Assembly (NCBI GenBank): GCA_015680685.1
Contig: MNCI01001065.1
Location: forward strand, 140,029 to 204,028
DNA from: Gnetum montanum
Taxonomy: Eukaryota > Plantae > Gnetophyta
DNA: 64,000 bases
Direction: 5' to 3'
Both the position numbers and the translations under genes were made by a program. The notes beneath the pieces are model-generated. The model saw only the letters and a list, made by a program, of their open reading frames with translations. It had not been told where the DNA came from and ran no database searches. Below, in pieces: positions 19,341 through 59,027 of this stretch; position 1 is the stretch's first letter; the number at the start of each line of letters is the position of its first letter.

Positions 19341-22300
19341 TAGTGTAGGAACACCTCTTCTAATTTCCTTTTTTTCCTACAAGTTGTTTTTGCAGGTTTG
19401 CATGCTTGAAAGAGACCAAAATGAGTGTGTCCTATTTTTGTGTGTCTTCTTATGTTGATTTTTATAATGAAGATTCTTAGATGTTTTCACATGTTTGGAG
19501 GTGTCTTTGGCCCATTTTGATGAGCCTAGGAGGTTCTAAGATCTATGGGGACTTTTTTCGAGGTATTTGGAGGCTCCAAGTATCAAAACAAGCATTTTTA
19601 TTTTTGGTACCTGCAAGATAGGTGTCTACCCAAAAATATATACATCTCACCTTAAACATCTAACTTGAAGAATAGATGTCTATGGACCAAAGTACACGTC
19701 TATCAAAAATAGTAGATGTTTCATATAAAAGTAAGACTTTCATAGTAGACATCTAATCAAGGCCAAAGATGTTTAAGATGGTAAGGGAAAAAGCTCCAAC
19801 ATGGCATTTCAATTAGGAAACATCTAAAAGACTTCATATCCTTGTGGGAAATCTCTAAGAAGCCAAATAGAAAGCTTCCTAGGGTTTTTGATCCCTATAA
19901 TTATGTATGTATCCATCCATGAGAAAGGAGGAGATTTTCTATAAGGAGAGAGCATCTATGCATGAAAGTGAGAGAGAAAGCATTCAAGCGTAGAGAGTTG
20001 AGCAAGAGAGATTGGATGAGTGCAATTGGTGATTACAGCTCCAAGATTAGCTTGTAGTATGTTTGTGTATGTGTTCTATTCTCTTGTATCTCACTTGTGA
20101 GTTGAGACCTCAATCCTAGGTTATGGAAGAGATTTATATTGATCGTGTCTTACATTAAGAACAATCATTATGTGGTTGTAGAGCCTCATGCTCTATAATA
20201 TTGGTTGAGTGTGATAGGTTTTGGCTGTTTGTGTGTTGTGTGAACCCTATACTAACCTTCTAATAAATTAATTAAAGATAGCCAGTTTTCTTTTTTCCTA
20301 GTAAATAATTTTATCTTTGCATAATATCTTAACTTAGTGCATTAAAGATGATTTAATTATTGAAGTGAACTTGCTCCAGCGTTATTGGTATCAAAGCCTA
20401 GTTTTATTATTTCTTGGATTTTGGTTGAGGATTTTGTCAATTTTAGATGACACCCAAGAATAAGTAGGTGTAAGCTCTAAATTGAGACATGAAGAGCATG
20501 ATGTCCACCTTCCAAATGATGGTTTCTCGATTGGATGAAATTAGTGCAAAGGTGGATAGACATGCTGGTCCTAGCCATATTCAAACACATGAAGATAAAG
20601 AGCATGTATGTTCAAATAAAGAAGTTTCACAACCAGGTGTAGATAGAGTGGATAAAGAGGAAGGTCAATCTAGATATGGAAGTTTAAGAAACCATCAACC
20701 AAGGATTCCAATGGGAGGGAATCTTATTCCTCAAATAAGAACTCCAAGGGCTTCAATGGTGTTCATACTTCTTCAAGAAATCTTAACAATGAAGATGAGG
20801 CAAGGCTTTCTAGAGCATTTAGAAATGCTTCAAGACTTCCATAACTAAAGTTGAAGACTTTCAATAGTATAGATGGTACCAATGCTTTTGCAAGTTGGCT
20901 GAAGGTACTTAAGAAGCATTTTCAATTGGAAGAGGTACCAAATAACTTGAGGGTACCTACTGTTGAATCCAAATTAAAAGGTATGGCTTTTACTTGGTGA
21001 GAAAAGGAGTCCCAGGGTCATGAAAGATGAAATAGTTAATCCATAAAAGATTGGAATATGATGAAATATAGGTTTAAAAGAAAATTTGAACAATCTTGTT
21101 AGAGAAAAGAAACCATTATGAAGTTGAAATTACTAAGGCAAGGTAACAAGGATGTCAAAGAATGTTACCTTAAATTTTGTGATCTATTCAATCGAGCTAA
21201 GGTAAACTGGGAGTATGAAATCTTTAATCTTTCTAGGAGCTCTCAAAATGATGAATTAGCAAGATTGTTCCTTTTATGAGCCACAAACCCTTAATGAGGC
21301 TTTTGATTTGGCACTCAAGGCTAAGAAGACATTAGATGGATTCAAAAATAGAAGCAAACAAACTTTTAAAGGGAAGGAGAAAGGATTCAGATCTGATAAG
21401 GGATCCAAGTCTAAATCTAAAGAGAAGAAGGGAAACCAAGATAAGAAGACTAAAGGAGGTGATGAGAAGGGTAAAACCAAGAAGGACCTAAGCAAGGAAG
21501 ACAAGGGTCAAGGTAGCAGCTCATCAAAAATTCAATCCTTCAAGTATAGAGAATGGGAACATAAGTAATGGGAATGTTTGCTTCACAAGGTAGCCAAGGA
21601 CAAAGATGTGCAAACCATAGAGGTGGAGGAGACATCAAGCCAAGCTCTTCAAAGAGGTAATACTAATGCTTCAAAGATTAAGAATGTTTTTGAATTAAAT
21701 TCTTGTGCATTCATGGGAAATATAAATAGAGGATATCATCTTGATAGGAAAGTTTTGTTTCAAATTGGGGCTAGTTGTTTGCTTAGTGAGGAATGGATTC
21801 ATGTTTTGATTCATGGGAAAGTACAAGAAAATTTTATTTCTTCTAGGATAGTTACTAGATTGGGTTTGGTAACTAATCCTCATTTGAGACCCTATAAGGT
21901 GCATTGGTTATCTAGAGATTTTTCCCAAGAGGTGAGGGAACAATGTACTTTGAAATTAAAAATTAGAAGTTTTCATGATGTTGTGAAATGTGATGTGCTT
22001 TCAATAGATTATGCTGATGTAATTCTTAGTAGACCTTGGAATTTTGAGAACGGTGCTTAGTTTTATGGAGCAAGAAATGTGTGGATTGTAGTTAGACATA
22101 ATGGAATCCATTACTTGATTCCAATGACAACTGAACAAGGGAAGAAACATAGCACACTTAATGCTTTCTTAATCTTTCTAGGAGAGAGGGAATATATTAA
22201 GGAACATGATGAAACTAGTTTTGATTTTGTTGTTATGAAAACACTTGCTACTAACCATGATGATGCAAAGGTTGAACTTCCTACAGGTGTGCTAGGCTTG

Positions 22301-28600: not shown

Positions 28601-31600
28601 TTGATCTTTCTTTTCATCTTCTTTAAGTTGAAATTCTTAGTTCTTCTCAAATATTACTTTCACTAAATTTTTTTCAATATCAACCTACAAACATCTTCAT
28701 CATTCATCATCATTACTATCTCATCAACATCATTAATCTCTCTTATCAAGATTGGCATATCTTTCAATTACAATTCAAATTTTCGTCATTCAAATGACCA
28801 ACAATCACTTATACTTTAACATCTTTATCTCATCCCAAATTTCTCATAATTTAACTTCATATAATCTTCTTATTAATTACAACAGTGGCATCAAAGCCAG
28901 TTTCATTATGAGCTGCACAAACATAATAAAATATCAATATCAATAATAAGGAAATAGCTAAATATTCTATCATCTTTAAAGGTATACAAGATTTAATCTT
29001 ATTTAAAAACATGATGAAAGGCCTCCTTAAGGTAAATGATATCTGGAAAGTAATTGAACTAGAGGAAAACCAACCTTTTCAAAATCACTCTAAATAAACA
29101 AAATAAAGATGAAGAATATCCCTTGCGAAGGATTTGTTCAAGGAATAAAAATGAACAAGGAAAGACTCCCATGCTAGAATGATCATTATCTTCAATATTT
29201 TATAGGCAATAGTAGGAAGATTATGCTTTTTAAATACTACTAAACAAATATGGGATAGATTATGCTCAAACTATCTTGGAAATTGAAAGAATCAATACAC
29301 TAATGAACTCTTATACAAAATTTAGTTTGACAAAATTAAGATCAAGAAGGAAGAACATATTTATAATTTTTTCTTACAAGAATATACAGTTTTATCAAAA
29401 ACATTGATAAATTATTTGGGTGTGGCTTCATACAACATTAGAAGTTCCAAAAGATTATAGCAACACTTTATAATAACTCTAACTATCAAAATAAAAAAAT
29501 TGAATCATTTACAATAAATAATTTAGTTGCTCAAATAAGAACACTTGAAAGTTTGAGGATAGATAACACTACAAAGGATCCAATACTTACTACCAACAGA
29601 GGAAATGGAAGACCTAATAAGGAATAGAAAGATTTAATAGACAATATAACAAAGATCAAAACATGATAAAGACTTTACCAAGAGATACAAGAGGCATAGG
29701 ATTCATAAGAAAAAGATAAAATAACCAAGGATGGAGAAATGCACAATCCTTCAATCCCATTCTATCATGCAAATTTTCTAACACCATATAGACCAGCTAG
29801 GACAAAATTGGATTTGATGAACTCTAACTCTAGAATAAGAATCAAGATGAAGCTTTGACCTTAACTTCAATGCGAGAAGAAAATAAAGGTGGAATCGAAG
29901 TTGTCATTTCTAGCAACATTATTAAACAAAATTCTTCGATTATAGATAGTAGATGCTCTAACCATAGGATACCGTATAGATTCAATCTTCTTTACTACAA
30001 GCCCAATAGACTTTATAGCATTAAATTAGGTGATGGTAACATTCATAACATAGAAGAAGTAGGAAATTCCATTTTCAAATTACCAAATAACAATGCTATG
30101 ATTATCACCAAAGTATTCTATATCTCAAACCTCTCAAATCCTTTACTTTTAGTTGGACAAATGGCTAAAAAGGAATCAATGTTAATTTCAAAAATAAATG
30201 TTGCATCATCACAAAACAAAATGAAGAAGAAATCATTAGAATCAAGACCTATAATAATATAATTTATGTAATAGATTATAATCACTTTGATTCAAAAGGT
30301 AATCCCATTAACATTATTCATGATTCCAAAAAATCCATAACACAAATAACAACTTCAAAGAACAAAATAGATTTAGACACTTTCAAAAATACATCTAGAC
30401 ATTAGCATTCAATTGTAAATGAAGAAGAAGCTAAGATATGACATAAAAGATTAGGTCATATCTCATATAATAACCTAGAAAAAATGTCCAAACCAAAGAA
30501 AGTAATAGAACTCAAAATTAGAGAAACACCCAAAGGAAAATATGAAATCTACATACAAGAAAAACAAACTAATAATCCCCATAGCATAATTATGCAAATA
30601 ACAACAAACCTCTTCAACTTCTTTAGATTGATCTCATTGTTCTTATGCCAATCACTTCAATTGGCAGGGAAAACTACCTTCTTATTATGATAGATGTACA
30701 CTCTAGATTTACCTAGACATACGACATGAGAACTAAGGATGAAGCACTAAGAAAGTTTAAAGATTCTTATACCATCATACTTAATACCATGAATCTTACT
30801 ATTAAAGCCACTAGATTGACAAAAAAAGGAGAACTCATCAACAAATATTTTGAAGATTTCTATTCAACATAATGAATATTTCATCAAAAAAACATATTGG
30901 TGCAATTCACAATTAAATGAACTTGTGAAAAGGAAAAACAAAACTCTACAAGATATCATAAGGTGCCTTCTGAAAAATGCACAATTACCAAACAACCTTT
31001 AAGCATGGCCATGACTATGGAAACATATAGAACAAATAGAATTATCAAAAATAGCAACAAATACAAATCACCATATGAACTTTTCTACAATAAGCTCCCA
31101 AACATCCAGCACATGAAGATATTTGGATGTCATTGCTATGTTAAAACTCCAAAAAAAAATTTCTTGATAAATTGGAAAGTAGAGAAAAAATACATATTTC
31201 TTGGCTACAACACAAAAACAAGTGGCTATAAATGGTATAACCCAATTGAACACAAATGATACTCATCAAGAGATGTGCTATTCATTGAAGAAAAATTCAG
31301 TATAAATGATATCCAAAAACGTAATGAAAAATCAAATACCCTAAATAACCCTAAGTTAAGGATTCAAAGAGACAATCCTCAAGATCAAACGTTAGATGTA
31401 AATTTTGAAGGAAGGATAACCCTATTCAATTCATCAAAGAACCTTTCGTATTCAACCCTTAATCAAGAGCCAACTAACATACAAGAAGCATTGAAGATCA
31501 AATAATAAAACAAAGTCATTGACAAGGAGTATGAAGCCATCATGAAGAATAATACCTAAAACCTCGTGGACACAATAAAAGGAAAGAAGATAACTAATTT

Positions 31601-32540
31601 TAAATGGTTATACAAAATAAACTATAATGAGAAAGAATAAATTATCAAACATAAAGCAAGACTTGTTGTAAAAGGATTTAGACAAAAGAAACACATTGAC
31701 TATAAAGAAATATTTCTACCTATAGTAAGGTTTGAAACTATAAAGTTTATTCTTTTTATAATAGCTCATCAAATCTTATAATTACATCAAATGGATCTAA
31801 AATTAGCCTTCCTTAATAGAAATCCAAATGATAAATTTTATGTGTAGTAACTTATAGAATATAAAATTACAAGAAAAAACAAAGTATGCAAACTGAAAAA
31901 GGCTTTGTATGGTTTAAAGCAAGATCCCCTAGCTTGGTTCCACAAAATTAATGACTTTCTTCTCAAGAAATAATACTCATCATGCATGTTTGAACTAATT
32001 ATATATTACAAGCATGACAAGAATGACTTCATAATAATCTCTCTATGTTGATTACCTATTGGAAGAATTAAAATTAGACATGAAAAATGAATTCAAAATA
32101 AAATATTTTGGAGAACAAAAATAGTTTCTTGGCATTAAAGTTGAACAAGGAAAGGAGGATATCAAGGTTCACCAAACTAAATATGCAAAATCCATACTAG
32201 AAAAATACAACATGATAAAAGAAAAATTAGCAAATTCTCCTCTACTTCATAATATCAAACTTGAAAGTAAAGAGAAAACTCCTTTTATGAATGAAAATAT
32301 GTACAAAAGTATGATAGGAGCACTGAGATTTCTTTCCCATACTATTATAAATCTAGAATTTGCTTCATCATTTCTATCACAATTCATGTAATAACTACGA
32401 GACTCTCATCTCATCATCATCATCCTAGCCTTGTCTCAACAAAATGGGGTTAACTACATGAGCTCTTTTTTGTCATTCACCTTTTTAAAGAGCTAGATCT
32501 TTGTTTATTTGTAGATTTTTCAAATCATTTTTTTCCATGT

Positions 32541-35500
32541 CTAGAGAAGGTTCACTCCAATAATTAAATCACCTTCAATGCACTAAATCTAGATATTATG
32601 CAAATAAAAAATTATTTGCTAGAAAACAAGAAAACTATCTATCTTTAATTAATTTAATATAAGATTATAATATTTTTTACACAACCCACAAGCATCCAAA
32701 ACCTATCACACTTAACTGATATTGCAAAGCATGAGGCTCTACAACCACACAATGGTTGTTCTTAATGTAAGACACAACCAATAGAAATCTCTCCCACAAC
32801 CTAAGACTGAGATCTCAACTCACAAGTGAGATACAAGAGAATAGAACACACAAATCAACACACCACAAGCTAATCTTGGAGCTGAAATCACCTATTGCAC
32901 TTGTCTAGTATGTTCACCTAGTCTCTTTGGCCTAACTCTCCACTCTTAAGAGTGTTTCCTCTAACTCCTACTGCATACAAGCTCTCTCTCCTTAAATACA
33001 AGATTTCTTCTTTTCTCATGTATGGATACATACATAATTATAAAGATCAAAACCCCTAAGAAGATTTCTATTTGCCTTCCTAGATATTTTTCACAAGGAT
33101 CTGGAGTCTTTCAAATATTTTCCAATCGAAACACCACATTAGAGCTTTTTCCCTCATCTTCTTAGATATCTCTAGTTTTGCTTAGACGTCTACTCTTTTC
33201 CATAGACATCTATACTTCAAGTTAGACATCTAAGGTGAGATGTCTATCTTTCTAGGTAGACGTCTATCCTATAGATGCCAAAAATAAACATGCTTGTTTT
33301 GATGCTTGGAGCCTCTGGATGCCTCCAAAAAATTCCCCATAGACCCTAGAACCTCCTAAACTCATCAAAATGATCCAAACACACCTCCAAACATGCTTAA
33401 AAATCCAAGAATATTCATCATAAAAAATCAACACAAGAATACATGCAAAATAGGACACACTTGTTTAGGTCTCCTTCAATCATGAACACCTATAAAAATA
33501 TTTTGTAGGAAAAACATAAGGGAATCATAAGAGGTGCTCCTACACCAGCTCTCCCATGATTCAAAATGTGAACTCATGTAAATAAGGAAGTAGTGGTATA
33601 AGTGATCCCTCACTCAACAAGTTTGGTCTCATGGACCCATATAGCATCATTAGTGGATTAATCCTTCCAATGAATCAAATATTCATGCCTCTTAACTCTA
33701 CAGATTCTAGAAGCTTCCATCTGCTTGAGTACAATTACCTTCCTCTCCATTAAAGGCTTGGACTAATCAATTGCCCCCTTCAACTCATTGATGCTATCCT
33801 ATATGGTCTCCTCATCAATTGGTCAATGATAGTGCACAAGATCTGAAACATTAAACACAAAAGACATATTGTTTAGTAAATCAATCTTAAAAGAATTATC
33901 ATTAATCTTAGCCTTGATTTTCAAATGCCCCATCTTCTTAGCTTTAAATTTGAAGAAGTTAACATCTCTTAATTTCTTCTTCTCAAATGCATGTAAACCA
34001 AGTCACCAATAGCAAAATTAGTCTTCTATTTTTCCTTATTCCTCTTAAGGACTCTCTCTTCAACCTTCTTCTCAAGATTTGATTTTACATGTGCATGAAG
34101 ATCCATCATCTCTTGCACAAAATCATCACTAAATTGAAATTCACCATCAAAGCTCTTCAAAGTATCCACCATCTTTGGACAAAATGCATAATTCATCTCA
34201 AATGGGCTTTTGCCAATCACAACATGAAAAGTATTTTCATACAAAAACTCAACATTCTTCTTCTTGGTTTTGGGAAGTCTCTTACTCATCCTTCATCTAC
34301 CATGAAAATCATAATGTAGATTGGATTCATGTTGTCCATCCATTTCATAGCTAAGACAATCAATTTCATCCTTATCAATATCCAAATTAGCATTAATAAG
34401 GATCTTCTCATAATAACTACTATTATAGCCATATACATTAGGAAAATTACCATTGTTAATCTTTCTCTTATCAACAATGGCATCCAAATTTACATTTCTT
34501 TCATCATGCGCAACATAACTTAAAACTTCACCACAACCACCATAATAATCATGATGCTCATCATCATAATGGAATAGACCACTACTAAGCTAAAGTGAAA
34601 AACTAGAATCCAACACACTAGATTCTACATAAGAGATATTACTATCATCTACAAGGTTAAGCTTAGACTCACTTACCTCTTTAAGACTTTTCTTATCCTT
34701 CTTTGGTTCAACTAGATCTTTAACATATGGTTGTCCACGCTCATCAAAGCTTTTAGCTTTAAGATTCCACACAGGAGTCTCCAACTCCAATGGTTTCTCC
34801 TCTTCAAAGGAATCATCAATAGCTTCTACAATCCACTTTGGTGGTACCAACTAAAAAGGTAAATTCTCCTCCATGGCTTAAACATCAAATTCATTGAAAT
34901 CATTCTTTCACATATCTTAGCTAGAAGACTCACCTCTCTCCCTTGAGATAGCCTCAACTTGGTAAAGAATTTTCTTTCCTTTGTCATAATATATAGAACA
35001 ATTGCACAAAGAATGAATATCATACCCTCCAGTTATGCTCTTGATCCTTCTTGAAGAACTCCCTTGATCCTTGCCACTCCCTTGGCCTTGATCTTTCACC
35101 TCTCATAACATATGAGGTAAGAACTCTTCTTGATCAACCACATACACCATCTTGAATTATGAAGATTGCTTGTTCTCTTTGATGAAGCTCTTCATTCCCT
35201 CTTTTGAAACTTTTGAGTATTGAGCACTTCCTTTCTTAATAAGAGATGCTTAAGAACTCCTTCTCTCATTCATCTCTACTTCACCAAACCTTTCATCTTC
35301 CTTCTTGAACATCTTGTGAAATTTTTCCTTTAAGCCTAGCACACCTATAGGAAGTTCAACCTGCACATCATCATGATTAGTAGAAACTATTATCATAACA
35401 ACAAAAACAAAACCAATTTCATCATGTTTTTTAATATATTCCCTCTCTCCTAGAAGGATTATGGAAGCATTAAGTAAGCTTTGCTACCTCACTTCTTCAA

Positions 35501-38291
35501 CTATCATAGGAATATAATCATGGATTTCATCAAGTCTAACAACACTCCACATATTTCTTACTCCATCAAACATAGCACCATTGTCAAAATTCCAAGCTCT
35601 ACCAAGAATTACATCAACACAATCTATTGGAAGTAAATCACATCTTCCAACATCATGAAAACTCCCAATTTTAAATTTCAAAGTACATTGTTCCCTCACC
35701 TCTTGGAAAAAACCTTTAGACAACCAATGCACCTTAAATGATCTAGGATGAGGATTAGTTACCAAACCCAATCTAGCAACTACCCTAGAACAAATAACAT
35801 TTTCTTGGGCTTCCCCATCAATCAAAACATGAATCCATTCCCCACTAAGAAAACAACTAGTCCCAATCCAAAATAACAATTTCCTATCAGGATGATCTCC
35901 TCTATTTATATTCCCTATGAATGCACAAGAATTTAATTCAGAAACATCCTCAATTTTTTGAGCATTAGGATTACCAATCTAAAGATCTTGGTTTGATGTC
36001 TCCTCCACCTCCATGGTTTGCACATCTTTTTCCTTGACTACCTTGTGTAGTGGACATTCCCATTGCTTTTGTTCCCTTTCTTCACATTTTAAGCATTGAA
36101 TGTTTGATGAGCTACTACCTTAACCCTTGTCTCCCTTGCATAGGTCCTTCTTGCTTTTACCCTTCTCATCACCTACTTTAGTCTTCTTATCTTGGCTACC
36201 CTCCTTGTCTTCAAATTTAAACTTGGATACCTTATCAAATGTAGATCCTTTCTTCCTCACTTTAGAAGTTTGTTTGCTCCTATTTCCAAATCTGCCTAAT
36301 TTCTTCTTAGCCTTGAGTGGTAAATCATAAGCCTCACATAGGGTTTATGGCTCATAAAAGGATAACTCTTGCTAATACGTCATTTGAGACCTCCTAAAAA
36401 GATTGAAGTTTGCTCATACTCTTCCTAGTTTACCTTAGCTTGATGGAATAGATCTTTAAATTGGATGTAAAATTCTTTAACATCCTATTCACCTTGCCTT
36501 AGAAATTTCAACTTCATAATGGTTTCTTGTCTCTGACAAGACTATTCAAATTTTCTTTTTAGCTTGTATTTCATCAAATCCCAATCTCTAATAGGTTAAC
36601 CAATTCATCTTTCATATCCATGGAATTCCTCTTCCCACCAAGTAGAAGCCATACCTTCTAATTTGGATTCAGTAATAGGTACCCTTAAGTTATTCAGTAC
36701 TTCTTCCAAGTGAAAATTCTTCTCAAGTGCCTTCAGCTAACTTGCAAAAGCATTGGTGTCATCTACACCTAGGAAAGTCAACTCTATGTATGGAAGTCTT
36801 AAAGCATTTCTAAATGCTCTCACAAACCTTGCCTCATTTTTGTCATCAATTTTGTTTGAAGAAGTATTGAACACCATTGAATCCCTTGGAGTTCTCATAT
36901 GAAGAATAGGATTCCCTCCCATTGAAATCCTTGGCTAATGATTTCCTACACTCCCATAGCTAGATTTACCTTCCTCTTCATCTACTTCATCTTCACTTAG
37001 CTGTGAAACTTCTTCATCTAAACATACATGCTCTTCACCACCATGTGTTGAAATATGGCTAGGACCAGCATGTCTATCCACCTTTATGTTGATTTCATTC
37101 AATCAAGTAACCATCATCTGGAAGGAGAACTTCATGCTCTTCATGTTTCAATTCAAAACTTGCACCTATTTCTTCTTGGGTGTCATCTAAAATTGACAAA
37201 ATCCTCAACCACAAATCCAAGAAACAATAAAACTAGGCTTTGATACTAATAACACTAGAGCAAGTTCACTCCAATAACTAAATCACCTTCAATGCACTAA
37301 ATCCAAATATTATGCAAAGATAAAATTATATGTTAGAAACAAGAAAAGTACCTATCTTCAACTAATTTATTAGGAGATTATAATAGGGTTCACACAACCC
37401 ACAAGCATCCAAAACTTGTCACCCTTAAACTATATTGTAGGGCATGAGACTCTACAACCACACAATGGTTGTTCTTAATGCAAGACATAATGAATAGAAA
37501 TCTCTTCCATAATTCAAGACTAAGATCTCAACTCTCAAGTGAGATACAAGAGAATAGAACACATAGATCAACAAACCACAAGCTAATCTTGGAGTTGCAA
37601 TCACCTATTGCACTTGCCTAATGTGCTCACCTAATCTCTCTTGCCTAGCTCTTCACTCTCAAGAGTGACTCCTCTCATTCTCATTGCATACAAGCTCTCT
37701 CTCCTTGAATACAAGCTCTTCTCTTTTCTTATGGATGAATACACATATAATTATAAAGATCCCAAATGCTAGGAAGCTTTCTATTTGCCTTCCTAGATAT
37801 TTCACATAGGGATCAAGTCTTTTGAATGTTTTCCAATCAAAACATGACATTAGAGCTTTGTCCCTCACCATCTTAAACATTTCTGGCTTTTCTTAGATGT
37901 CTACTATTAAAGCCTTGTTTTCATGTGAGATGTCTACTCTTTTTGGTATAAATCTTCTTTGGTTCGTAGACATTCATACTTTAGGTTATATGTCTAAGGT
38001 GAGACGTCTATCCTACATGTGCCAAAAATAAAAATGCTTATTTTGATGCCTGGGGTCTTTGGATGCCTCCAAACAAGTCCCCATAGATCCTAAAATCCCT
38101 TAAACTCATAAAAATGAGCCAAAAATACCTCCAAACATGCCAAAACATCCAAGAATCTTCATCATAAAAAATCAACACAAGAAGATGCACAAAATAGGAC
38201 ACACTCATCCAAGTATCCTTCAAGTACAAACACCTACAAAAATAACTTGTAGGACAAACATAAGGGAATCGAAAAAGGTGTTCCTACACCA
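32541..38291 (-). mobile_element. CRM-like Gypsy copy 2, non-autonomous (gag, PR and INT tail; no RT, RH or INT core)
   Basis: 5' LTR 38291-37250; PBS 37248-37236; 3' LTR 33547-32541; PPT ATGGGAGAGC; gag with CLKC..ECP knuckle ~36100-36050; PR VLIDGEAQENV...VILGRAW 35879-35484; INT tail GKSPFEMNY...KIND...VFNVSDL ~34255-33830; flanks ATGT/ATGTT. Confidence 0.92.
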
Positions 38292-38768
38292 ATGTTTTCT
38301 TTGGTCTTCCTTTCAATGGCTTTTTTAGAATAGTAATGTAGTAACCTTTGTTTAGAATTATTGTCTAATCTTCTTTTCACATGTCCAAACCATCTAAGCC
38401 ATCATTCTTATTATCAATGTTTCAAGTTTCCATCCAAAGTTTCAATCACTAGATTTGCTTCTTTATCCATGCTCGTCCATGATGTGAAAACCCTTATTTA
38501 CTTTCACAAGATCTAGATGATGATTTTTTGTGTCATTCCTAAAGGAAATCTTAATAAGCCCTTGCCTATTTTCCACAACAACTAAGCCCTTTAACTATTG
38601 TGCATCACATCTTGGGGAATGCCCTAGTATCTATAAAATTTAAAAAAGAACTCATCTATAACATTTTTCAAGGTTTTATAGCCAGCTACCAACCTAATGT
38701 GAACACTTTTTTCATATCCAGGCTTGGGACCAACATTAGTGGAGTTACAAATTTCACAATTTTCAAAA

Positions 38769-38834
38769 ATTTCCAAGAGGTTACTCATTCTAGTACTACT
38801 TCAAGATGAGCATGCTTAATTACAAAATTTTTAT
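38769..38834 (-). promoter_or_regulatory. 5S rRNA-derived segment (Pol III type-1 box A / IE / box C region), decayed
   Basis: Minus strand ATAAAAATTTTGTAATTAAGCATGCTCATCTTGAAGTAGTACTAGAATGAGTAACCTCTTGGAAAT aligns almost without gaps to plant 5S ATCAGAACTCCGCAGTTAAGCGTGCTTGGGCGAGAGTAGTACTAGGATGGGTGACCTCCTGGGAAGT; most mismatches are transitions. Confidence 0.85.
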
Positions 38835-40022
38835 CTTAATTGCTAACAACTAGTTAATTCAATAGGTTATGTAAAAGCTCTAAAAGATCTCATCTAAAAG
38901 CTCTAATCCATATTTTGAAATATGTATAAGAAATAATTAATTATGGATTAATATATATTAGAGGAGATGACAAATTTCAAGCTTATTCAAATGTTGATTA
39001 AAGAGGAGACAATGACAATAGAAAATTAACTTCAAGGAAAATCATCTTCCATGGTAAAAATGTCATTTATTAAAAACTAATAAAACAAAAATTGTTCAAT
39101 CTTTCTACATGTGAAGCAAATTTTATTGATATGGATAAATATACCTAACACATCCATTTGTTGAAATAATTAAGGATACATCTTGGATTCAATGTTGACT
39201 TACCAATTAATTTGTCTTATGACAATACATTGAGCACACAAATTTTCAATAAATATGATTTTCACAAAAAATCAAAGCACGTTAACATAAAAACACTACT
39301 TCATTAAGCATATAGTAAAGAAGGGAAATATCAAACCAATTCATGTGCAATCTAATAATCAATTGGTTGATTTTTGTATTAAACTTCTCATGCATTATAC
39401 ACATGGGCACCTTTGTAATGGCATAGCCATCAAGAAGACATCAACAAAAGAGAAAGAAACTTCCATTACACCCTAAACGAGGGACTGTTGATGTTAGAGT
39501 ACAATGTAAGCCATGATCCAACATGAAGATAAGGAGCTAAATACATGAACTTATTACGTCTCTTTTTATTACTAAAAGCTAAAGAATAATTATATATATA
39601 TATATATATTGACTCATAGATATACTTTATTTTGGCCCTAATTCATCCCTATTTTTCTAAATTTACTCAACTTTACATTACAGAATGACTTTTCAACACC
39701 TCCTAATATAGCCTCTATTTTCTTTATACATTCCAAGGTCATACCATGTTGTAATAATTATTTTTTCAAGCAATGAAATATAGCTATGAATTTCTAAAAT
39801 TTCATTTTTCTCTCTTTTTACCTTCTTTAAGTTTAAATTCTAGATTATTCTCAAATATCACTTTTACCAAGTTTGTTTCAGCATCAACTCCCTTAACTTC
39901 ATCAACCTATCAACATCTCCATTATTCCTCATCATCACTATCACATCAACATCACCAAGCTCTTTCATCAAGATTAACATTCCTTTTAATTATCATTCAA
40001 AATTTCATCATTCAAAAAACCA

Positions 40023-46899: not shown

Positions 46900-49800
46900 C
46901 CTTCATTCATGCTTCTTTGTTATTGTTTCACTCCTCTTTCCTTTCAATAGTAAGTCCTTCTATATGATGAGGAAATAAAAGGAATTTTGATATTTTTCTA
47001 TTAATTTATCATTAACTTCTAGAATTATTTTGATAAGTGTTTTAACATTTTTCTAGCTACTACTCTCTTATATTCTAATATCTTTAGTGTTCAATTTATT
47101 TCCAACTTCCCTACCCTTTTTGCCTTTCTTAATATTATCTAGGAAAGGTGTAGTCTTTTCTTCTTTTTACTTCCTACTCTTGAATTTTCATGTCACTAGT
47201 TTGCCTAATGACTTAACCTTTTTCTGTTGCCTATTTTACAAATGACTAGTTCTCTTTGTTCCAGCCACTTCAAAAATAATATCCAATTCATTATTCTTAT
47301 TTTCACTTCCTTTGAATTTGTTGTCTGGTTTTTTTGTTCATTCCCCTTCTTGTTCAAATTCTTTCTAGAAGAGAGCTCTCCTATTTCAACTAGGGTATTA
47401 GAATTTTCTTCTTTTTCTCTACATTTTAATTTTGACAATATATGATTTTCTACTTCCATATGAGAAAAATGGTTTTATTAATTTCAATATTTTGTAACCA
47501 GCCAACGATGATCTAGCCCTATCAAAAATGTCCTTCACACATGTAAAGCTTCCATCTAAGCACCAAATGTTGTATATCCTCTACAGGAAACTAAAATTAA
47601 TATGGTTATCCCTATTTGAGACAAATATATGTCACAAATGCAGGTGTGATGCATATGGAGGGTCCTCTACCTTCATTCAATCTAATCTAATTTTTATCTT
47701 TCTACTCAAAATAGAACTCTAAATCCATAAAAATTTCCTTCATCTACTCATTATCTAAAATATGACTACAAGAAATTTGCAAACCCTTATCCTAGATTAT
47801 GATCTTGCTTATGTCTTTACTTCTTAAAGAGAATGCCACTTCCACGTCACCTTACTTGTATACAAACTTGTCATTTCTTTCTCTCCAAGACTACTTTGAT
47901 AACCTCCTGCAGGATCTTTTCTTCTTTAAATATCTTTACAAATATATATCTTGTAAAGTCCAGCTCTTGTAAATTTACCCAGTTCAACTATTGTAACTTT
48001 TTCCATACTTTTTGAGAAAATTTTTCTCTAGATATATTATCAACATTTCTTAAATATATCATTTCTTAAAGTATTGTTCTTCTTCTTACACCATTTGAAT
48101 GTCCCAATCTTCTTCCATTTTGTTCTTCATTTCTTAAGCATGTTGTTATGTAGCTTTAGCATATTATAGATTGCAAACACAACTTTTTTATTCTTTTGTC
48201 CTTTCCAAATTTTAACCTCTTGCTTCCTTAGCTTCTGAGTATAGTAATCATTCATTGCAAACTTATATAAATTTTAAATTACTCTTATTATTCTCTCACA
48301 TAAATGATTTACTCATCATCTTAGATTAATTGATGAATCACACTTAGATTATTTAAATTCTCGCTTCTTCTTTTGAAAAATATGATTTATTATAGCAATA
48401 TTCTATTCCTTTAACTTACAAGAGATCTTGATCATGTAATTAATGCTTTTCATCATGTCATCAAAGTTTACGTCTTTATTTATTTTAAAATCCTTCATGA
48501 TTTTATAAATTGAAGCTCAGTTGTGTTCATAAAAAATATTTATCACTTATTTTTATATATTTTATAATTTTCCATCATTATTTCAATAATACATTATCCC
48601 CTTATCATCCTTCTTCATATATTATTTCAAAAGTGAACTTGAGATTTAATTCTCATATCATTTCTAGTCTTGAGCTTTCATCATACTGTGTTTTTATTCC
48701 TTCTAAGCTTCAAACTGATATCTTCAATGTCATTTAAGAATCTATCTATACCAACTATTAACAAGGTCAAAATTCTTTAATGTCTTTAGAACATGGTTTA
48801 CTTTGATATCATGTTAATTGATGATGAGGACTATGATGTTATTCCTGCCAACATCATTATCAAAATTATTAATTACATTTCTACAAGTTTACATCATGAT
48901 TTCATCCTTTATAAGAATGAAGCATTGATATTCCATTTGTTTGGAACTTGCAACTTCCATATGTATCATAGATTTTTCAATCTCTCATGGACTTTGTTAT
49001 CATTACTACATTCTCTGTGCAATTTTCATTCTCAGTCCTCTTGTAATATGTCTTAATGTTATCATTCTAGCTTAATTATTTTTCAATTTGGAAATTCATC
49101 TTCTCTTCCTTAACTTTTACAGTTATGAGCTTGCTACTACTCATTGTCGTCTTTTCTAGAATAGCTAGTTATATGGTCACTCTATCTATCTTCCATATAT
49201 CATGGTTGATTTGTCCTTCATTCTTTACATGGACAAACCTCACCTTCTTTGTTTCTCTCATAATTTTGGATTGATGATGTTTCTTTCCAATCAACCAATG
49301 TTTATGACTGTCGAATGAACTTAATTAATAATTGCTTACCTATAGTATTCCACCCATTTTTTGAACATGGTTTTAATGGCACAAATTTTCACTCTTTGTG
49401 TGGATGTTATTTTTTCTTTTTATGTATCTTCTCTCATGATACAATTCTTATCTTTATCATTGACTTGTAAGTGACATGCTTCCTACAAGTTCTTTCTCCC
49501 ATTCAACTTGGGTTTCTTCATCTCTAGCACTTGATCTTCACACAGATCATAATTTATTGTATATTTTTATATTTCTCATAGATTATATTACTTAATATAC
49601 ACCTTATTTTCTATGATATAGATCCTGATGAGTCTTACGAACAACTGCAATCCTTTCTGTTTAGAAACACATCTCTTTGATTAAATTGTGATCCATGGAA
49701 AATATCATTAAATTATACTTGAACCTAGTTTTAGTATTTTTGGAACCTCACTGTTCTATTAGTAGGGCTTCTTGTTAAAATATTGCCAAAATATCCTCAT

Positions 49801-50580
49801 GATCATTAAATTATCATTCAAAGCTTTATAGGTATTTGAATTATGTCTTTATATTCTGAAATTTGATGTGTCTATCTTAGTATAACTTCTCATAGTGGTT
49901 ACATTATGAAATTGAAAGTGAAATTTTTTCCTTAAATTCATTGAGATCCTTCAACTTTATCAAACTAGTTTCAGATTTCCTTCTATAGAAATTTTTTTTT
50001 TAATTTATAGCTTAATGCTGCCAAGTGGAATCAAACTTATGACTTGGTATCACCAGGACAAGACTCTTACCACTAAACTAATACTTCATTATTGATCATT
50101 CTTAATGATAAATTTTAGTCTTTCAATATACAAATATCTGAGGGGAGGAGATGTTGAACCCTAAAATTAAAATGTATTATAAAAAAATAGAGTCAAATGT
50201 GGAAAAACACCAAAGAGTGATTAAAATCTAGCAAAACATTTTTAAAATGGCCTAATAATTTTAGGAATTCCTTTTCGTATTTTTCATCTTTACAACTAAT
50301 CCTAAAAAACCTCTCCTTAGGGTCATAAAAAGCATCAAACATTGCCCTCTTTTAAAAGTACCTTCTTGGATTTCACTTCCTTCTAAGATTTTCCTATAAA
50401 TAAAATGTGATTTCCCTCTCTTAGATCTTTATATTGTATTCCTTTTCTCTCGTCTATTTCTCATTATTAGAAATTAACATAGCATAACATTAAAATTGTG
50501 TCTATTGCAATATGTTTGGGTAGCTTTGTAGTACCTATATAGTCTATCATGACTTAGGGGGATCCATCGCCACTTCAATT
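46900..50580 (+). mobile_element. 3' region of a Tat/Ogre-like Gypsy: antisense ORF relics, PPT and start of the 3' LTR
   Basis: PPT GAGGGGAGGAGA at ~50140-50151, then TGTTGAACCCTAAAATT at 50152; CCTATAAATA near 50393; homology to 18960-19330. Both boundaries are uncertain. Confidence 0.55.
49991..50085 (-). mobile_element. tRNA-derived SINE
   Basis: Minus strand: A box TAGTTTAGTGG, B box AGTTTGATTCC, short body, poly(A) tail; similar to 55873-55962. Confidence 0.7.
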
Positions 50581-52949
50581 TGCAATGATTATGCTAACTA
50601 AAAAATGATTGCCACTACCTCTAACATAAGTTGTAATGAATTTTATGGCTCTTAAAACGATTGCAATTTCAATTACTTGATGATGTCCTTTATTTATCAT
50701 GCAACATTCTATGTGCATTAATCCTTCTAGGTTATCACAAGTAGCTGAACATGAGTTAAACCTATCCAAATCCATGATGAAATAACAAACAAATTATGCT
50801 TGATTTATTTTTTGAAGCAAGATAGAGTTGAATCTATATTGGCCAAGGCATATCTAACAGAAGTAAACAAAAACAATCATTCCAATTTCTAACACAATAG
50901 ATATCTATTAGTGAAGGGTAAACAGTGGCACTTCCATGAGTATCCAGATAAAAATAAATAGGCCTAAGAGATTAAAAAATTAAAAAACAAAAACAAAAAC
51001 TACCACTCACTGTAAACTTTATTTTTTCTTTTTTGGGTGGAACCAATATAAACAAACCTTTTAATAAGAAAATCAAAGTTTCGTTCCATGATTAAGTGGA
51101 GATAATAATTTCATGAATGCCTTCAAAGTAGTCATTTATTACTTTTACAAGCAATTCCAAATCAAAATCCACTCAACCAAATCTCATGACAAAATGAGAT
51201 GAGGATTCCACTATTTATTAGAAATGAAAAGCCTATTGTGACTTGTTAGAATTTTGGCAATTGCCAAATTTTGTTTTCAACATTTTTACTTATTCTTCAA
51301 AGTCAAGTTGTCAAGGTGCTTATAGCCAAGAGAAATTTGTAATAGGCTCATAAGCCATGAAAAATGGCCAAAACAAAAAAGGCATAGATGTAAAGCCAAA
51401 AGTCATAAAATAGTCATTGGTCTCAACATCAAAGTATTCATCCATAATAAGTTGGTTACAATGTACAGTGGTCATGGTATCTAATTCTATTTTTATGTTG
51501 TATTCGAACATATGCTAAGGTGCATAAACTTATACTTGTTTCTTGTATTCTAATAATGTCATGTATAAGATGTGGCAAGTGTGGCCAAAGTAGTGGAGAA
51601 GTGCATTAAGTGCAACAAATAACGGTCACAAAATTAGGGAAGTCACATAGGAGTAATGGGTATTATTAAGAGGTTGTCGAGAGGTTATGGTAGTTATATT
51701 CCATATTGAAGTTACTCATGTTGTGCTCATTCATGAAGCATCATGTGAGTGGCATTTGATTCTCTTAATGAGGTCACTTCTAGAAGAGTGAGCTTTCATA
51801 TCCATTGACTATTGGCTATGTAGCATGTAAAGTGTGTTGGCTAGAAACAATGTAGCATTTTGTGTATGTAATTAATTCAAGATGGATTTTACTAAGTTTC
51901 TTTTTTTCTTTTTTCTTTTTTTCTTTTTTTTTTTTTTGCATCCCTACAAAATTTTCTACCCTTATGCTATTGTGTTTTAGAGCTTTGTAAGCTTCCCCAT
52001 GATCATTCTCTCATTCTCGTAGCATATTTCACATATGAATTTCTCCCATATCAAGCCAGCATGATTACTAATAATTTTTTCACAAGTATTTCTTTCATTC
52101 TTGACTCTCATTCTCTCAAAGATGTTCTCATTCTCACATCCAACTCTCATTCTCTCAATTAGCTCTCAATTACTCTTAATTTCCTGCAAGTGTTTTACAG
52201 TTAAAAGTTTGGTGAATGATTTGAGGCCAAGTTGATTTTGATATGAAAGACAAGTTAACAATTGTTGGTTTTGATAATTAGAAGCTTAGACACATTTCTA
52301 CTTATGCATGCAAGGCTCAAACAAAGTTTTTGTTCCTCTAAGTTGTGATTTGACCAAAGAGCACTTGTTGTAGTCCAAGTGGTAAGAATGATCCATAAAA
52401 ATACCTAATGTTGTGTCTGTATTGTAGCCTAAGAGGCATGAATTCCTCAAAAGAATCCAAGATGAAAACATCAATAGAATTTTCAAGATGATAAAATGGT
52501 TAAAAATGCCAAGAAGGCAAGAAAGGTGGCCTTAAAATGGCTAAGATCTAAGAGATCCAATGTGGCTCATGAAAAGCTTCCTAAAATTCTCTTAAGAATT
52601 TAAAAAAACCAAAGGGAAAAGATAAGTAATTAAGATCCTCAAAATATCAAAAAAAATCATTCTCCAATGAGTCTAGCTATGGATACTTCATACTTTCATC
52701 CAAATTTATAAATAATTTTCTAGGTATTTTATTTCTTGTGATTTTGTGCAGATTTTAGATGTTCATTTACAATGACATCTAAGAAGAAGACTACTTAAAA
52801 ACTATATAAAAAGTTTCAATATCCCAAAGCTAGTTTCAAATCACCTACTCATGATAGATATGAAATCCTTCTATAACTAAAGACATCATCCCATTAGTAA
52901 GTTAAATCTTACCATCATAAGTAATAGAAAGAAAAACAATACAACAATA

Positions 52950-55050
52950 TTTTTCCTTTTAGGCTCAGGTAAAATCATACTTATAAAGTAGGCTTATGAA
53001 AAAATAACACAATGACTTTTATCAACAAATGAAAACCACCTCAAAACTCTTATAATTTAATAATGAAGATGAGGCAATAATAGCAAGGCCATTGAAGCAT
53101 GAATTAAAATGCCTTATGGAATGCAGTAATCCTATTTTAATGAACTTGAATGGATAGATCTCTTCTTTTCATGGTTGAGGGATTTTAACAAACATTTCTA
53201 AATGGATCAAGCACCTAATCACATAGAAAATTTCTATGTACAAAGTCAATTAAATAATTTAGTAACAATTTGATGAAATAAATATTTTAATGATTACTTT
53301 TCAAACAAATGTATTTTCCACAAAGATTGGATGAAACATGTACCCAATAGAATGTAAAGTATTTACTAAAGAAGAAAGTTGTGAAAAATGATGAAGTACT
53401 TAAGGTATAATGAATATTAAAGACTTCTTCATTGATTTTATTAAGATAATTAAGAAAGTGTTAGCCAATTTGATTGTTAATAAGCAAGAAATTTCCTAAA
53501 AATGATCTAGAAATATCTTATGAACAAAAATTTGGCATTTTATTAGTCTCAATATTTCAATAATAAATACAATATTACAATGAAATATGAGCAAAAGCAA
53601 ATAGTAGTAGATCAATGAGGTTTTAGATTAGTGGTAAGATTCTTAATATAGAAAAGACATGATCACAATATCAATTCTAATGAACAATGTTGTGTTATGA
53701 ACAAATAAAAAAATTCATAGAAAGAAGCTCTAAAATTAGTCTGATAGATCCAAGAGGGTCTTAGTGAATGTCAAAGGGTTCAGATAGAGACATGAATAAT
53801 AAAAATGCTTTAAACAAAGCTTAAAATAAAGAAGATAAAAGGTACATGAAAGGTTTAGTGTTTTGCTTACAATGAACTACACCAATTCAATTTCAAAAGT
53901 CAAAGAGTAATATTTAGACAGAGACATCAACAAGGATAATTATTAAAATAAGTTAAAATTAAGGAGATAAAAGATAAAGAAAGTGGTGCATGAAATGTTT
54001 AGTTCTTTACTTATGATGAATTAGGCCATAAGCACTAAGGTGCCAAAGCCCAAGCAAGTGGGAGGAATAAGAAGTTGTAAGAAATGAAGAAGAATGAAAT
54101 TTCATTACAAGGTATGTTGAGGGATAAACCTAATCCTTCAAGGATTAAAGAAATTTGATAATATTAATGAGGGAAAATAACTCTCAAAAAATTGTTACTC
54201 ATAATAAAGATTCAATGTTTTTCCCATGTGCAAATGAATTACATATTAATTAATGAAGGGGCATAATAGTATGTTACTTTCTTCAATATTATAAAGAATT
54301 AACTTAGAAATAAATCAAAAACCTTACATTTACAAGGTACATTAGCTTTTCAAGGACCTTTCTAAGAAGCTAAGAAAGTAAATGATTGTAAGTCATGGTT
54401 AAAGAAATTTAATGTTTAGAAAATCTATGTGAATAATTACACTTATGTATTAATTTCATTAATTTCTAAGCAAGTTGAAATAAAATTTAAGACTAAATCA
54501 TCTTTAGTATTTTTGAGTAGACAGTTCTAAAATTGGAAACTTTTTTCTTTCCATATTTTTTTCTGATGATGTCTACTCAATGTCAAGTTTGTGATGTACT
54601 TTAAATTTTCTTTGTTCACTATTAATATTTTTTTGGTGTCAAACACCACCATTCCCAACTTGAGATTAAAGCCTTATTAAGAAAGTTTTCAAAGGTATTT
54701 AAGAAAATTCTAGAGAAATATTTTGTAAAAGATCATCATTTAATATCAAATAAATTTCATATGATGAACTTTCATTTCTAATAAAAATTTTTATAGAATG
54801 ACATCTTAATAAATTCAAGGCAAGAACTTAAAAAAAGAGTGAATGAGATTGTAACCATTGGTTTTAAGAAGAAAATTAATTTCCCTTACATTATACAATA
54901 CTATATTAGGAGAATTACTAAGTTTTCTTAGTAACATTTTCAATAAATCAATCAAGTTTTCAATAGTAATATCTCATTTATGTCTAATGTGCTCAAATGT
55001 AAGACATTACAAGAAAGTATGATGTTTATCTTCAATGCTATTTTTATTGC
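52950..55050 (+). mobile_element. Highly decayed CRM-like gag-PR-RT start
   Basis: INLEINQKPYIYKVH*LF ~54300; EIKALLRKFSKVF ~54660; QELKKRVNEIV ~54820. The order is collinear with CRM copy 1. Confidence 0.55.
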
Positions 55051-55069
55051 ACAATCAGTATATTTGTCC

Positions 55070-55263
55070 TTCATAAGGAATTTTAAGCTATCTACCTCAT
55101 CTCTTAAGTTCTTCATGAGGTTGTAGGGTTTAATTCCTACCTTTGTTTACAGATGTGATAGTAGTGAACCTTTTTGTTTAGTGGGTCACATCTACCTTCT
55201 TGTGTGGGTATGGGTTGTGCTACCAACCCTAAGTCTCCTTGCTTTAAAAAAATGAAAAAAAAT
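55070..55263 (+). mobile_element. Possible tRNA-derived SINE (longer family)
   Basis: B-box-like GGGTTTAATTCC ~55126 and an A-rich tail at 55245-55262; the A box is unclear. Confidence 0.4.
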
Positions 55264-55317
55264 AGTGTTTTTTTTTTCATAACAATTTAAGCTTATGAAG
55301 TATTGCTTACTTAGCTA

Positions 55318-55398
55318 GAGCATGCAACTATGTTTAATTTTAAGGATCATGCAACTATGCTTAATTTTAAGGAGCATGCAACTATGTTTAACTTTAAG
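55318..55398. repeat. 27-bp minisatellite x3
   Basis: GAGCATGCAACTATGTTTAATTTTAAG units at 55318, 55345 and 55372. Confidence 0.92.
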
Positions 55399-55779
55399 GA
55401 GTATGGTGATTTGACACCATTATGCATACTTTGCTTAAGTTCTATAAGAGTATCATGCTAGTTATATATTCAAGGTACATATAGTTAAATAGTTTTAAGC
55501 TCCAATACCTCATATCAAATTAAACTTTGAATAATATGTTGCAAATTCAGTGTTTAAACAATGATTTATTTAGATATTATTAGACTAAACATGCTATGCC
55601 TTTCAATAAGAAGCATGATTAGTGTAAACAATAATATTTTATCTATATTCAATCAAATATGAGGAGTTAATCACTTTTTACAACTCTAGAGGAATAGAAT
55701 TCAAACTATTTAGAAATTGATAAGACTCCTTGGATTCATTAGACTAGTTTCAAAACTCCCCAAGATATATAACTCAACA

Positions 55780-55847
55780 ATGCCCACCAAAATCGAACCC
55801 ATGACTTAAAACCTTTAAATCAATAGTCTTACCACTAGTTGAACACC
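55780..55847 (-). mobile_element. tRNA-like SINE head
   Basis: Minus strand CAACTAGTGGTAAGAC...GGGTTCGATTTT with tRNA-like A/B box spacing. Confidence 0.55.
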
Positions 55848-55872
55848 TTGCTTGGAGTGATACCATGAAGTG

Positions 55873-55962
55873 TTAGTTTAATAAAAAGAGTCTTGGATTG
55901 GTAACCTCAAATCATAGGTTCGATTCCTCAGAGTACTATAAAGTTATAAATTTGAAAAAAAA
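55873..55962 (+). mobile_element. tRNA-derived SINE, same family as 49991-50085
   Basis: TAGTTTAATAAAAAGAGTCTTG...CATAGGTTCGATTCC...AAGTTATAAATTTGAAAAAAAA. Confidence 0.7.
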
Positions 55963-57822
55963 TTGTAAATGGAATTATGGATTTGATTTGATAAATCTAA
56001 AGTGTCTTAGCAAACATAAGCAAAAATTCTAGTTTTAGTTGTAATATCTTATTCTTCATGACATGCAAATTTCATTATTATATAATTTTTCAATTGTGAA
56101 TGCTAGTAGTATTTTAATTTCATTATGCTTTTAAATAATTAGTTTTAGATAAACAAGTACTCATAATAAATCATTGTAAACTTCTTTTTTACTTTAAAAA
56201 TTTAGTCCATATTGCATAAGAACCTTAGTATTTTTCAAATGTGATTTATCATAGGCTCAATTAGAATTCGATTCAACTTGTATTAAGGCAATCTAATTTT
56301 TATTATAAACTTTATTTTTAATGAAAAATGAATATTTTTTTAAATGATTTATCTAACTGCTATGACAACTCAACTTACTTGTAGATTTTCTTTGATTTTT
56401 TAAACCTTCCAACCTAATGTATTTATTGAACATTTTAAATAGTGGACGAAATGAAGACATTAACATGAAGATACTTTTCAAAAATTCTTCAAAAATTTAT
56501 ATTTCATTTAAGATCATAGTTATTTTGTAGTTTCTTCTATTTAACTTCTTTGAATTTGTTTATTTTTTTAATAAAATTTACTTTTACATCAACTTTCAAG
56601 AACTCTTATAGAGTCATGTACATTGCTTTGGATTAGGAGATTAGAAGTGATGACTTTTATAAATACAAAACCCAATGGATCCATCACAACGGAAAGATTA
56701 CTTGGAAAGCTCCAAAGAAATGACTCCCATTGCAAGATACCTTTTTTGGGCTAGATAAAGGAATCTATGTTGTTCCAAAAGATGAAAGCTTTAGCATAAC
56801 CCTAGAATGTAGGATTACAAATTTCATAAATTTCTTTGAATATTTATTTTTTAAATGTCCTTTGATTGTTGCATGTGCAACTCAATTGAATGAGATTTAT
56901 TTTTACATAGTTTTAGATTAGTTTTTCTGACCTTGGATGCTTGGTTGTGCTATATGAGAGAGAAATCATTTTGGGCTTTCATCGTTGATGGACTACACTA
57001 CCATATCTTAACCATGACCTTTGAAATATCTAGATCCTAAGGCATTGTCTTGAATTATCAGGTTCTATTTTGTTTATTAAGAAAAGAGGTCATGAATCTT
57101 TCAAATGGTTGTTGTACTAGTATACACATTTAAATCCATCATTCTATATCACAATCTCTTTGTAATGGTAGGGGAAATAGTCTTTTGAAGCAAATGTGAG
57201 GAATACACTTTATGGCTTGAAGAAATAAAATTAGTATAAAACACCTAAATTTGTTCTTCCAATTATAGTCAAAGATTAGGATCTAGTTCAACTCCATGTG
57301 GAACTTGAAGGTCATCAAAAGACATGCATATCCTAGGAGATAACATAAAAAGCCCTTTGACTTCAACTTTTATTCCTTAGTTACTATCAAAAGAGTCTTA
57401 AAAGATTATTTAAGCTTGACTCTCACCTTTAGTTGAAACACCATTAAAATTAATTTGGATATCTAATGTGGGACAAAAGCCCCACTTTAAAAGGTACAAG
57501 ATTTAAAATCTCCAAAACTTCATTAGCTACTTCATGGGTTTAATTAAGGAAAGACATTGAGCAGTGATGAGCAATAGAGCAATCCTAACACTCTACCACA
57601 CACGTCACGAGTGCCAATGCATGACTAAATTGTAATCCATGAATGGGCAATGTAATTATGCTAGTAATTGATGTTAAGTTCAAGATTGTTGTCTTCCAAC
57701 TTTAAGATAGTGAAGTCTAAGTGTATGGTTTAGCTCTTAATGAGCCATATGATTAACTAATGTTGAGAGGCTCTATTCACCTTCTTGTGTGTCAAAAAAT
57801 TAAGTAAAATTCAATCAAAAGT

Positions 57823-58957: not shown

Positions 58958-59027
58958 AAAGTAAACATGATTAAATAATTTCTAAGACTATTTAGCTAAT
59001 AAAAAATAAATTTACCTTATCCTAATG

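Follow-up and report, generated by a model that had tools for sequence, protein, structure and literature searches.

We describe here a retrotransposed unit of 722 nucleotides (nt) on the minus strand of a 64,000-nt stretch of the Gnetum montanum genome (contig MNCI01001065.1; the whole stretch is referred to as the window, and positions are counted from its first letter). The locus is a plant composite retrocopy, made by the machinery of an RTE-type long interspersed nuclear element (LINE) and headed by a domain resembling 5S ribosomal RNA (rRNA), with a twister-like motif at the joint between the two parts. Its architecture is that of SINE3, the 5S rRNA-derived short interspersed nuclear elements (SINEs) of fish, mammals, reptiles and insects (Kapitonov and Jurka 2003, cited in PMC10946416 and PMC10886601). 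The 5S-like head, the RTE-derived body and the tail were inserted as one piece within one target-site duplication (TSD). It may well be that the locus is the retrocopy of a composite RNA, produced by RTE machinery in a single event, with a proto-SINE3 architecture and present as a single or low-copy product.

Results

The unit is what is left once a nested long terminal repeat (LTR) element (32538-38291) is removed, and it joins 596 nt (38887 down to 38292) to 126 nt (32537 down to 32412). It is bounded by two 8-bp TSD copies, at 38888-38895 (5') and 32404-32411 (3'), both of which read TCTCATCT on the plus strand and AGATGAGA on the minus strand; the 5S-like head abuts the 5' copy and the (GAT)n tail abuts the 3' copy. 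Read along the minus strand, a 40-nt leader without clear similarity to 5S (38848-38887, unit nt 1-40) is followed by a decayed 5S-rRNA-like domain (38751-38847, unit nt 41-137), which carries both an Rfam RF00001 match and a match to the box C core. These two parts, the latter in the sense orientation, make up the first 141 nt of the unit up to a predicted ribozyme cleavage site. Then come the twister-ribozyme-like motif (38698-38747; UAA-CUCC...UUGGUCCCAAGCCUGG-AUA...), a stretch resembling an untranslated region (UTR; 38612-38697), approximately 140 nt of low read depth (38470-38611), and the remnant of the C-terminal end of an RTE open reading frame (ORF; 38292-38469). The reading frame carries on across the nested insertion, as it does in other copies, into the end of the ORF remnant and the 3' UTR (32425-32537), and the unit closes with a microsatellite-like (GAT)n tail (32412-32424).

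Because an 8-bp match between two windows of 60-70 nt arises by chance in 8-11% of trials, as seen in a TSD control, an independent empty-site test was made. Both flanks of the unit (29834-32411 and 38896-39500) are decayed Copia sequence on the plus strand: the host element (29834-32403) retains remnants of the gag_pre-integrs, integrase SH3 and RVT_2 domains, and the unit interrupts its pol ORF precisely, with the ORF resuming after 38896. Joining 32125-32411 to the sequence from 38896 onward, so that the unit is lost together with one of the TSD copies, leaves the Copia pol frame unbroken (...LRDSHL|KALIHILKYV...). The joined translation aligns without gaps over the junction with a second Copia ORF in the window (11618-11872), with a score of 43 compared to a shuffle mean of 26, and only 2 of 500 shuffles scored as high. 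The restoration of the frame means that no earlier 5S-bearing sequence lay at the site, and that the 5S-like head and the RTE tail came in together, in one retrotransposition. The initial annotation of this DNA had described a unit of about 0.72 kb within a single TSD once the nested element is removed, and the 722 nt, the 8-bp TSD and the restored Copia frame confirm it. In run X6, moreover, a contig from a related species holds the same flank-to-head junction (38848-39049) with approximately 5% divergence, and the insertion is therefore older than the split of these species or subgenomes. CpG dinucleotides are almost wholly gone from the unit, which fits the decay of methylated DNA. A blastn search of the joined unit over the 64-kb window returned only the locus itself, and comparison of the unit with itself gave no significant similarity that would indicate an internal tandem duplication.

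For the head, the initial annotation had suggested a comparison with RF00001 (5S) by Infernal. Run on the locus, this did return a 5S alignment, at 38847-38751 on the minus strand, but its 16.9 bits are under the gathering score of 38; the E value is 0.52 over 4227 families, and approximately 1e-4 when recalculated for the single family asked about. The region of box A, the intermediate element (IE) and box C lies at approximately 38834-38769, with the box C core at 38799-38779 (minus strand). This 21-nt core, which departs from 5S only by G-to-A changes, matches the degenerate pattern GTAGTACTAGRATGRGTRACC with no mismatches; no other such match occurs in the 64 kb, or in any of 100 shuffles. 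About 55 contiguous positions align to 5S, and the central and 3' differences are nearly all transitions, G-to-A or C-to-U. On this pattern of matches and changes we take the 5S part of the head to be genuine though decayed; that it lies in the same sense as the LINE, as had been proposed, is upheld by the alignment, below the gathering score as it is, and by a box C core that is unique in the window.

The proposal that only the central part of 5S is present, instead, did not hold. Infernal places the whole 5S model on unit nt 41-137, with a 24-nt internal deletion and with helix I pairs that are mostly standard, and the head may be a rearranged, nearly complete 5S-like unit sitting behind a 40-nt leader, and not a central fragment alone. 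Box A would sit approximately 67-81 nt from the start of the unit, which is roughly the geometry of a type 1 RNA polymerase III (Pol III) promoter. The predicted RNA fold of the head is no better than that of shuffles (z 0.15), as expected for a decayed copy. Rfam at the gathering threshold matched nothing over the whole window, and the degenerate box C search found no second 5S core in its 64 kb. In the contigs of the read runs, 5S-like segments are abundant, and in each run the core is covered by approximately 100 or more distinct contigs.

Directly after the head, a pattern built from published twister blocks has one match, at 38747-38715 on the minus strand, and none in shuffles. The ordered 5' blocks are exact (L1 UAA, P2 CUCC, P4-L4-P4 ..GGUCCCAAGCCYGG, L2 AUA) and fit the published twisters of the Perere-3 system, which belongs to the RTE clade. 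The 3' blocks (P2 GGAG, L1 ..GGG) are lost in the locus copy; related genomes, however, have copies whose majority letters at 38709, 38708, 38705 and 38701 replace the local A-rich run by ..GGAGGG.., with 3' GGAG/GGG blocks that are 3 nt shorter than in published twister examples. The motif that the initial annotation had called an RTE 5' UTR motif does, therefore, exist, but we reinterpret it as a twister-ribozyme-like core and a candidate ribozyme. The fold of this region is no better than that of shuffles, as would be expected for a decayed copy, and no Rfam match to hepatitis delta virus (HDV) or hammerhead ribozymes was obtained at an E value of 10. Cleavage is predicted between 38747 and 38746, 4 nt past the end of the 5S alignment at 38751, and it is at this predicted site that the RTE-derived element probably has its canonical 5' end. 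As the transposing RNA of ribozyme-headed LINEs has its 5' end set by the cleavage site, the 5S-like head would be an add-on upstream of that end. A related copy is consistent with such an arrangement: its 1545-nt contig aligns only to 38737-38615, and the 1362 nt that it has upstream of this part do not resemble the head, so that headless copies exist, with homology that begins approximately 10 nt past the predicted cleavage site. We found no literature report tying twister motifs to plant RTEs, while such reports tie twister to RTE-clade LINEs in Schistosoma.

The 3' four-fifths of the unit is a shortened RTE derivative (a mini-RTE), made of the twister-like motif, the UTR-like stretch, the segment of approximately 140 nt, the last 60 or so codons of the ORF, the 3' UTR and (GAT)n; no reverse transcriptase or endonuclease sequence remains in it. 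The C-terminal remnant (DK..N..I...LRWFGHVKRR...GRPKKT), in which the WLRWFGHVKRR frame occupies 38401-38294, belongs to a very high-copy family. In three DNA runs from related plants contigs stack on the RTE region to a summed depth of up to 47,000-62,000, and the loose-end consensus of read contigs at 38292 continues across the nested insertion exactly as the joined unit does. The UTR-like stretch is likewise common to many other copies, with approximately 75-90 contigs per run. Many contigs in the three runs join 386xx to various points in 383xx-385xx, and variably shortened relatives of the RTE part must therefore exist; the low-depth segment 38611-38470, in which the putative first endonuclease codons of the initial annotation would lie, is absent from several of them, with joints from 38469 to 38617/8 in all three runs. 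We had also considered that 38689-38618 may be the "LRWMCG" region of an RTE ORF and not a UTR, as in a simple 5'-truncated RTE; this seems less likely to us, as the twister-like motif puts the canonical 5' end at 38746.

The LRWFGHV and GRPKKT motifs and the trinucleotide tail listed in the initial annotation are all present, the tail being (GAT)4 at 32424-32412. A microsatellite-like tail together with a short TSD, here of 8 bp, is of the type seen in the RTE clade, even though the repeat itself differs from those listed for plants, where RTEs mostly end in (GTT)n and maize RTE1 in (GATGTT)n (PMC6007223). The same work reports an RTE TSD signature that begins with T and lies approximately 10 nt downstream of a T stretch; the TSD of the unit begins with A and has TTTT directly before it, but the signature is a statistical one, about which one locus says little. 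Protein searches with the antisense 83-aa and the sense 58-aa ORFs of the unit gave no candidates, and a search with the 36-aa LRWFGHV piece returned two repeat-expanded fragments only. A follow-up search with one of these found only itself, and when the repeat-expanded fragment was compared to the unit by tblastn, LRWFGHV alone was matched. As a separate observation, the public predicted proteins P0001 and P0002 carry the RLRW(F/C)GHV motif of this LINE C-terminus tandemly expanded 5-9 times, an odd expansion inside a LINE ORF remnant.

The nested element, although not part of the unit, serves to date it. Its LTRs (32538-33547 and 37252-38291, minus strand) are approximately 1 kb long and 82% identical, with a Kimura two-parameter (K2P) distance of 0.21, and at usual plant rates its insertion would be roughly 8-15 million years old, which is a lower bound for the age of the unit. 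A decayed remnant of a primer-binding site (PBS) of the initiator methionine tRNA (tRNA-iMet) type is found at 37248-37237 (minus strand), directly after the minus-strand 5' LTR. None of its ORFs matched a Pfam family; one of them, protease-like and without a Pfam match, is 72% identical over 134 aa to an ORF of the element at 21569-22057 on the plus strand, and, to judge from this similarity, the two elements are members of one non-autonomous gypsy-like LTR family. The CRM label previously given to the nested element finds no support in these ORFs.

Elsewhere in the window, a LINE reverse-transcriptase fragment at 13401-13625 (plus strand; a weak RVT_1 match of 18.6 bits) is unrelated to the RTE unit, and assembly gaps (runs of N) at 9044-9378 and 63078-63950 produce false long ORFs in ORF lists.

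Discussion

What entered the Copia site, by target-primed reverse transcription starting from the RTE tail, was a 5S-like unit fused to a mini-RTE with a ribozyme-like head; in the reading we prefer, it did so as the single-event copy of a composite RNA. The way in which the 5S-like head was gained can be inferred from the joint itself. The head ends where a Pol III transcript of the 5S type would end, and the RTE part starts where a twister would cut; two origins would therefore be the simplest. The composite could have been an uncleaved co-transcript of a source copy located directly behind a 5S-type Pol III unit; alternatively, it could have formed when the reverse transcriptase switched template onto a 5S-like RNA, or when such an RNA was attached by an RNA ligase to the 5'-OH end that ribozyme cleavage leaves. 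Since the head ends just 4 nt before a twister-type cleavage site, the fusion of two RNAs or an uncleaved co-transcript fits at least as well as an evolved SINE, which, to be functional, would need to escape its own ribozyme and to read through T-runs. Eight runs of four to six T are found in this decayed copy, and these would stop Pol III, even though some were perhaps created by decay.

Several observations weigh against this reading as a whole or against parts of it. A chimera with mature 5S rRNA would be expected to begin at 5S position 1, and the unit begins instead with the 40-nt leader; the leader argues against mature 5S rRNA as the partner, and fits a transcript of a variant 5S type or of the Cassandra type. 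The Rfam twister models, queried with 511 nt and 106 nt, gave no match even at an E value of 10, so that the identity of the motif comes from its sequence blocks only, and this negative result, together with the unremarkable fold, is why we write twister-like and do not speak of a proven ribozyme. Furthermore, read depth over the leader is 350-550, or approximately ten times that of the adjacent flank (20-75), in the three runs, which could mean that head-bearing relatives exist, and the contigs of two runs break at the same position of the head, 38809, which is a weak hint of 31-mers shared with sequences elsewhere.

These last two observations bear on whether the locus belongs to a family. 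It is possible, and we put this forward tentatively, that the unit belongs to an amplifying SINE3-like family of plants, or represents a mini-RTE master form that bears the head. The 5S head would then act as internal Pol III promoter, RTE proteins would mobilize the RNA via the shared 3' end, the twister would free headless daughters, and rare uncleaved RNAs would make head-bearing copies. The position of the head at the 5' end and in the sense orientation, with box A at a distance from the start that approximates type 1 Pol III geometry, would agree with such a family, as would the leader depth well over that of the flank and the many variably shortened relatives of the RTE part seen in three runs. 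However, searches of the window, of metagenome contigs and of proteins revealed no second copy of the junction. The two metagenome contig scans, made for the 5S box C together with unit motifs, gave 0 matches in collections that are poor in plant DNA, and such blanks mean little. The depth beside the 5S core, moreover, drops steadily, from 5142 at 38801 to 1381 at 38782, with no plateau, and is 320-460 over the spacer after the core. A drop of this kind can be explained by spill-over from other 5S-like contigs, 5S ribosomal DNA included, and does not prove that head-bearing relatives exist; for this reason we rejected read depth as proof of a family of heads. A ribozyme placed right behind the promoter would also cut the promoter off, a body of 722 nt with T-runs is long for a SINE, and RNA run X10 gave approximately one read over the head, that is, no signal. 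The initial annotation had gone as far as to propose that an RTE family, or its partner, uses a 5S promoter. Although the architecture and the one-piece insertion that it described stand, no result supports this use of the promoter, given that no second 5S-to-RTE junction was found and that depth can be accounted for by spill-over. Rather doubtful, in our opinion, is also the wider scheme of a plant RTE lineage whose promoter-less, twister-headed RNAs would be launched from 5S-type Pol III modules: here head-bearing masters (5S head, twister, mini-RTE) would be transcribed from the 5S promoter, most daughters would come from headless RNAs freed by the ribozyme, and the masters would be renewed by the few RNAs that stay uncleaved.

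The remaining explanations do without a composite RNA. A headless mini-RTE might have landed beside or into an existing 5S fragment, such as a 5S pseudogene or a solo LTR of Cassandra, the terminal-repeat retrotransposon in miniature (TRIM) whose LTRs carry 5S sequence, and in that case head and body would reflect two events or a chance adjacency. The abundance of 5S-like segments in the genome (the 100 or more contigs per run mentioned above) would make such an encounter easy, the conserved core of approximately 70 nt is what Cassandra LTRs keep (PMC10853983), and the rate at which 8-bp matches arise by chance would allow for a spurious TSD. We regard this explanation as unlikely nonetheless, because it is largely refuted by the empty-site reconstruction, in which taking out the whole unit with one TSD copy lets the Copia pol frame read through, and by the RTE tail and the head each abutting its own TSD copy. 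The features of Cassandra are in fact missing at the locus, where there is one 5S core in 64 kb, no second LTR or other direct repeat around it, no PBS by the head and no polypurine tract (PPT), and where the TSD is of 8 bp and not of 5 bp. Finally, decayed and AT-rich DNA could resemble 5S by chance, in which case the unit would be no more than an RTE fragment that was rearranged or extended at its 5' end. The Rfam score, well short of the gathering score, and a fold like that of shuffles could be cited in favor of this view, which we consider very improbable given a 21-nt box C core that differs from 5S only by G-to-A changes and is absent from all 100 shuffles, the approximately 55 contiguous positions that align to 5S with differences that are nearly all transitions, and the single-family E value of approximately 1e-4.

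If a 5S-launched RTE lineage did exist, it would give plants their first SINE3-like system and could be the source, or else a sibling, of the 5S module that Cassandra carries. More generally, a Pol III-type unit directly upstream of the ribozyme-defined 5' end of a LINE bears on the question of how promoter-less, ribozyme-headed LINEs are transcribed. If the locus is a one-off fusion, it would still be a clean example of the possible birth of a SINE3, albeit of modest interest.

Among known systems, SINE3 is the one whose architecture the locus shares: a sense 5S head at the 5' end in which box A, IE and box C are best kept, a 3' end derived from a LINE, and an insertion within a TSD by the machinery of the partner LINE; some SINE3 families, in addition, have RTE-type tails. 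The 3' end held in common with a partner LINE is recognizable here in LRWFGHV/GRPKKT and (GAT)n, which are very high in copy number in three runs. The locus differs, however, in that it is approximately 720 nt long and holds ORF remnants, where a SINE3 has a short non-coding body, in the ribozyme-like motif between head and body, in its plant host, and in the one copy found in the window. According to a 2024 review, no 5S-derived SINEs are known in plants (PMC10946416).

LINE-mediated chimeras of small RNAs, such as U6/L1 and 5S/L1 within one TSD, are documented in mammals, where they do not propagate (bioRxiv 10.1101/2025.02.02.635956). Like these, the unit has a small RNA of the Pol III type 5' of the 3' part of a LINE, within one TSD and from one event, and requires no propagation. 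The partner here, in contrast, is of the RTE type and not L1, the 5S part lies in the sense orientation, whereas in most human 5S/L1 chimeras it is antisense and truncated, the unit has a 40-nt leader ahead of the 5S part, and the LINE part starts at a ribozyme-defined end and not at a random truncation. For that end the closest parallel is Perere-3, an RTE-clade LINE of Schistosoma mansoni headed by twister variants, in which what lies upstream of the cleavage site does not belong to the element (PMC8501958). In both, the 5' end of an element of the RTE clade carries a motif of the twister type, with the blocks UAA, CUCC, GUCCCAAGC, CCGG, AUAAA and GGAG; the Gnetum locus, however, is from a plant, is decayed and fails the Rfam twister models, and it took with it the 141 nt that precede the site.

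Cassandra, lastly, is a plant retroelement as well, and its LTRs keep a 5S core of approximately 70 nt with flanks unlike 5S (Kalendar 2008; Maiwald 2024, PMC10853983). A promoter core of such length between flanks of this kind is likewise found at the locus, which differs in its microsatellite tail and in its signature of non-LTR mobilization. One proposal is that Cassandra gained its 5S module when a SINE3 inserted into an LTR, and a 5S-headed non-LTR element from a plant would be the missing piece of this origin.

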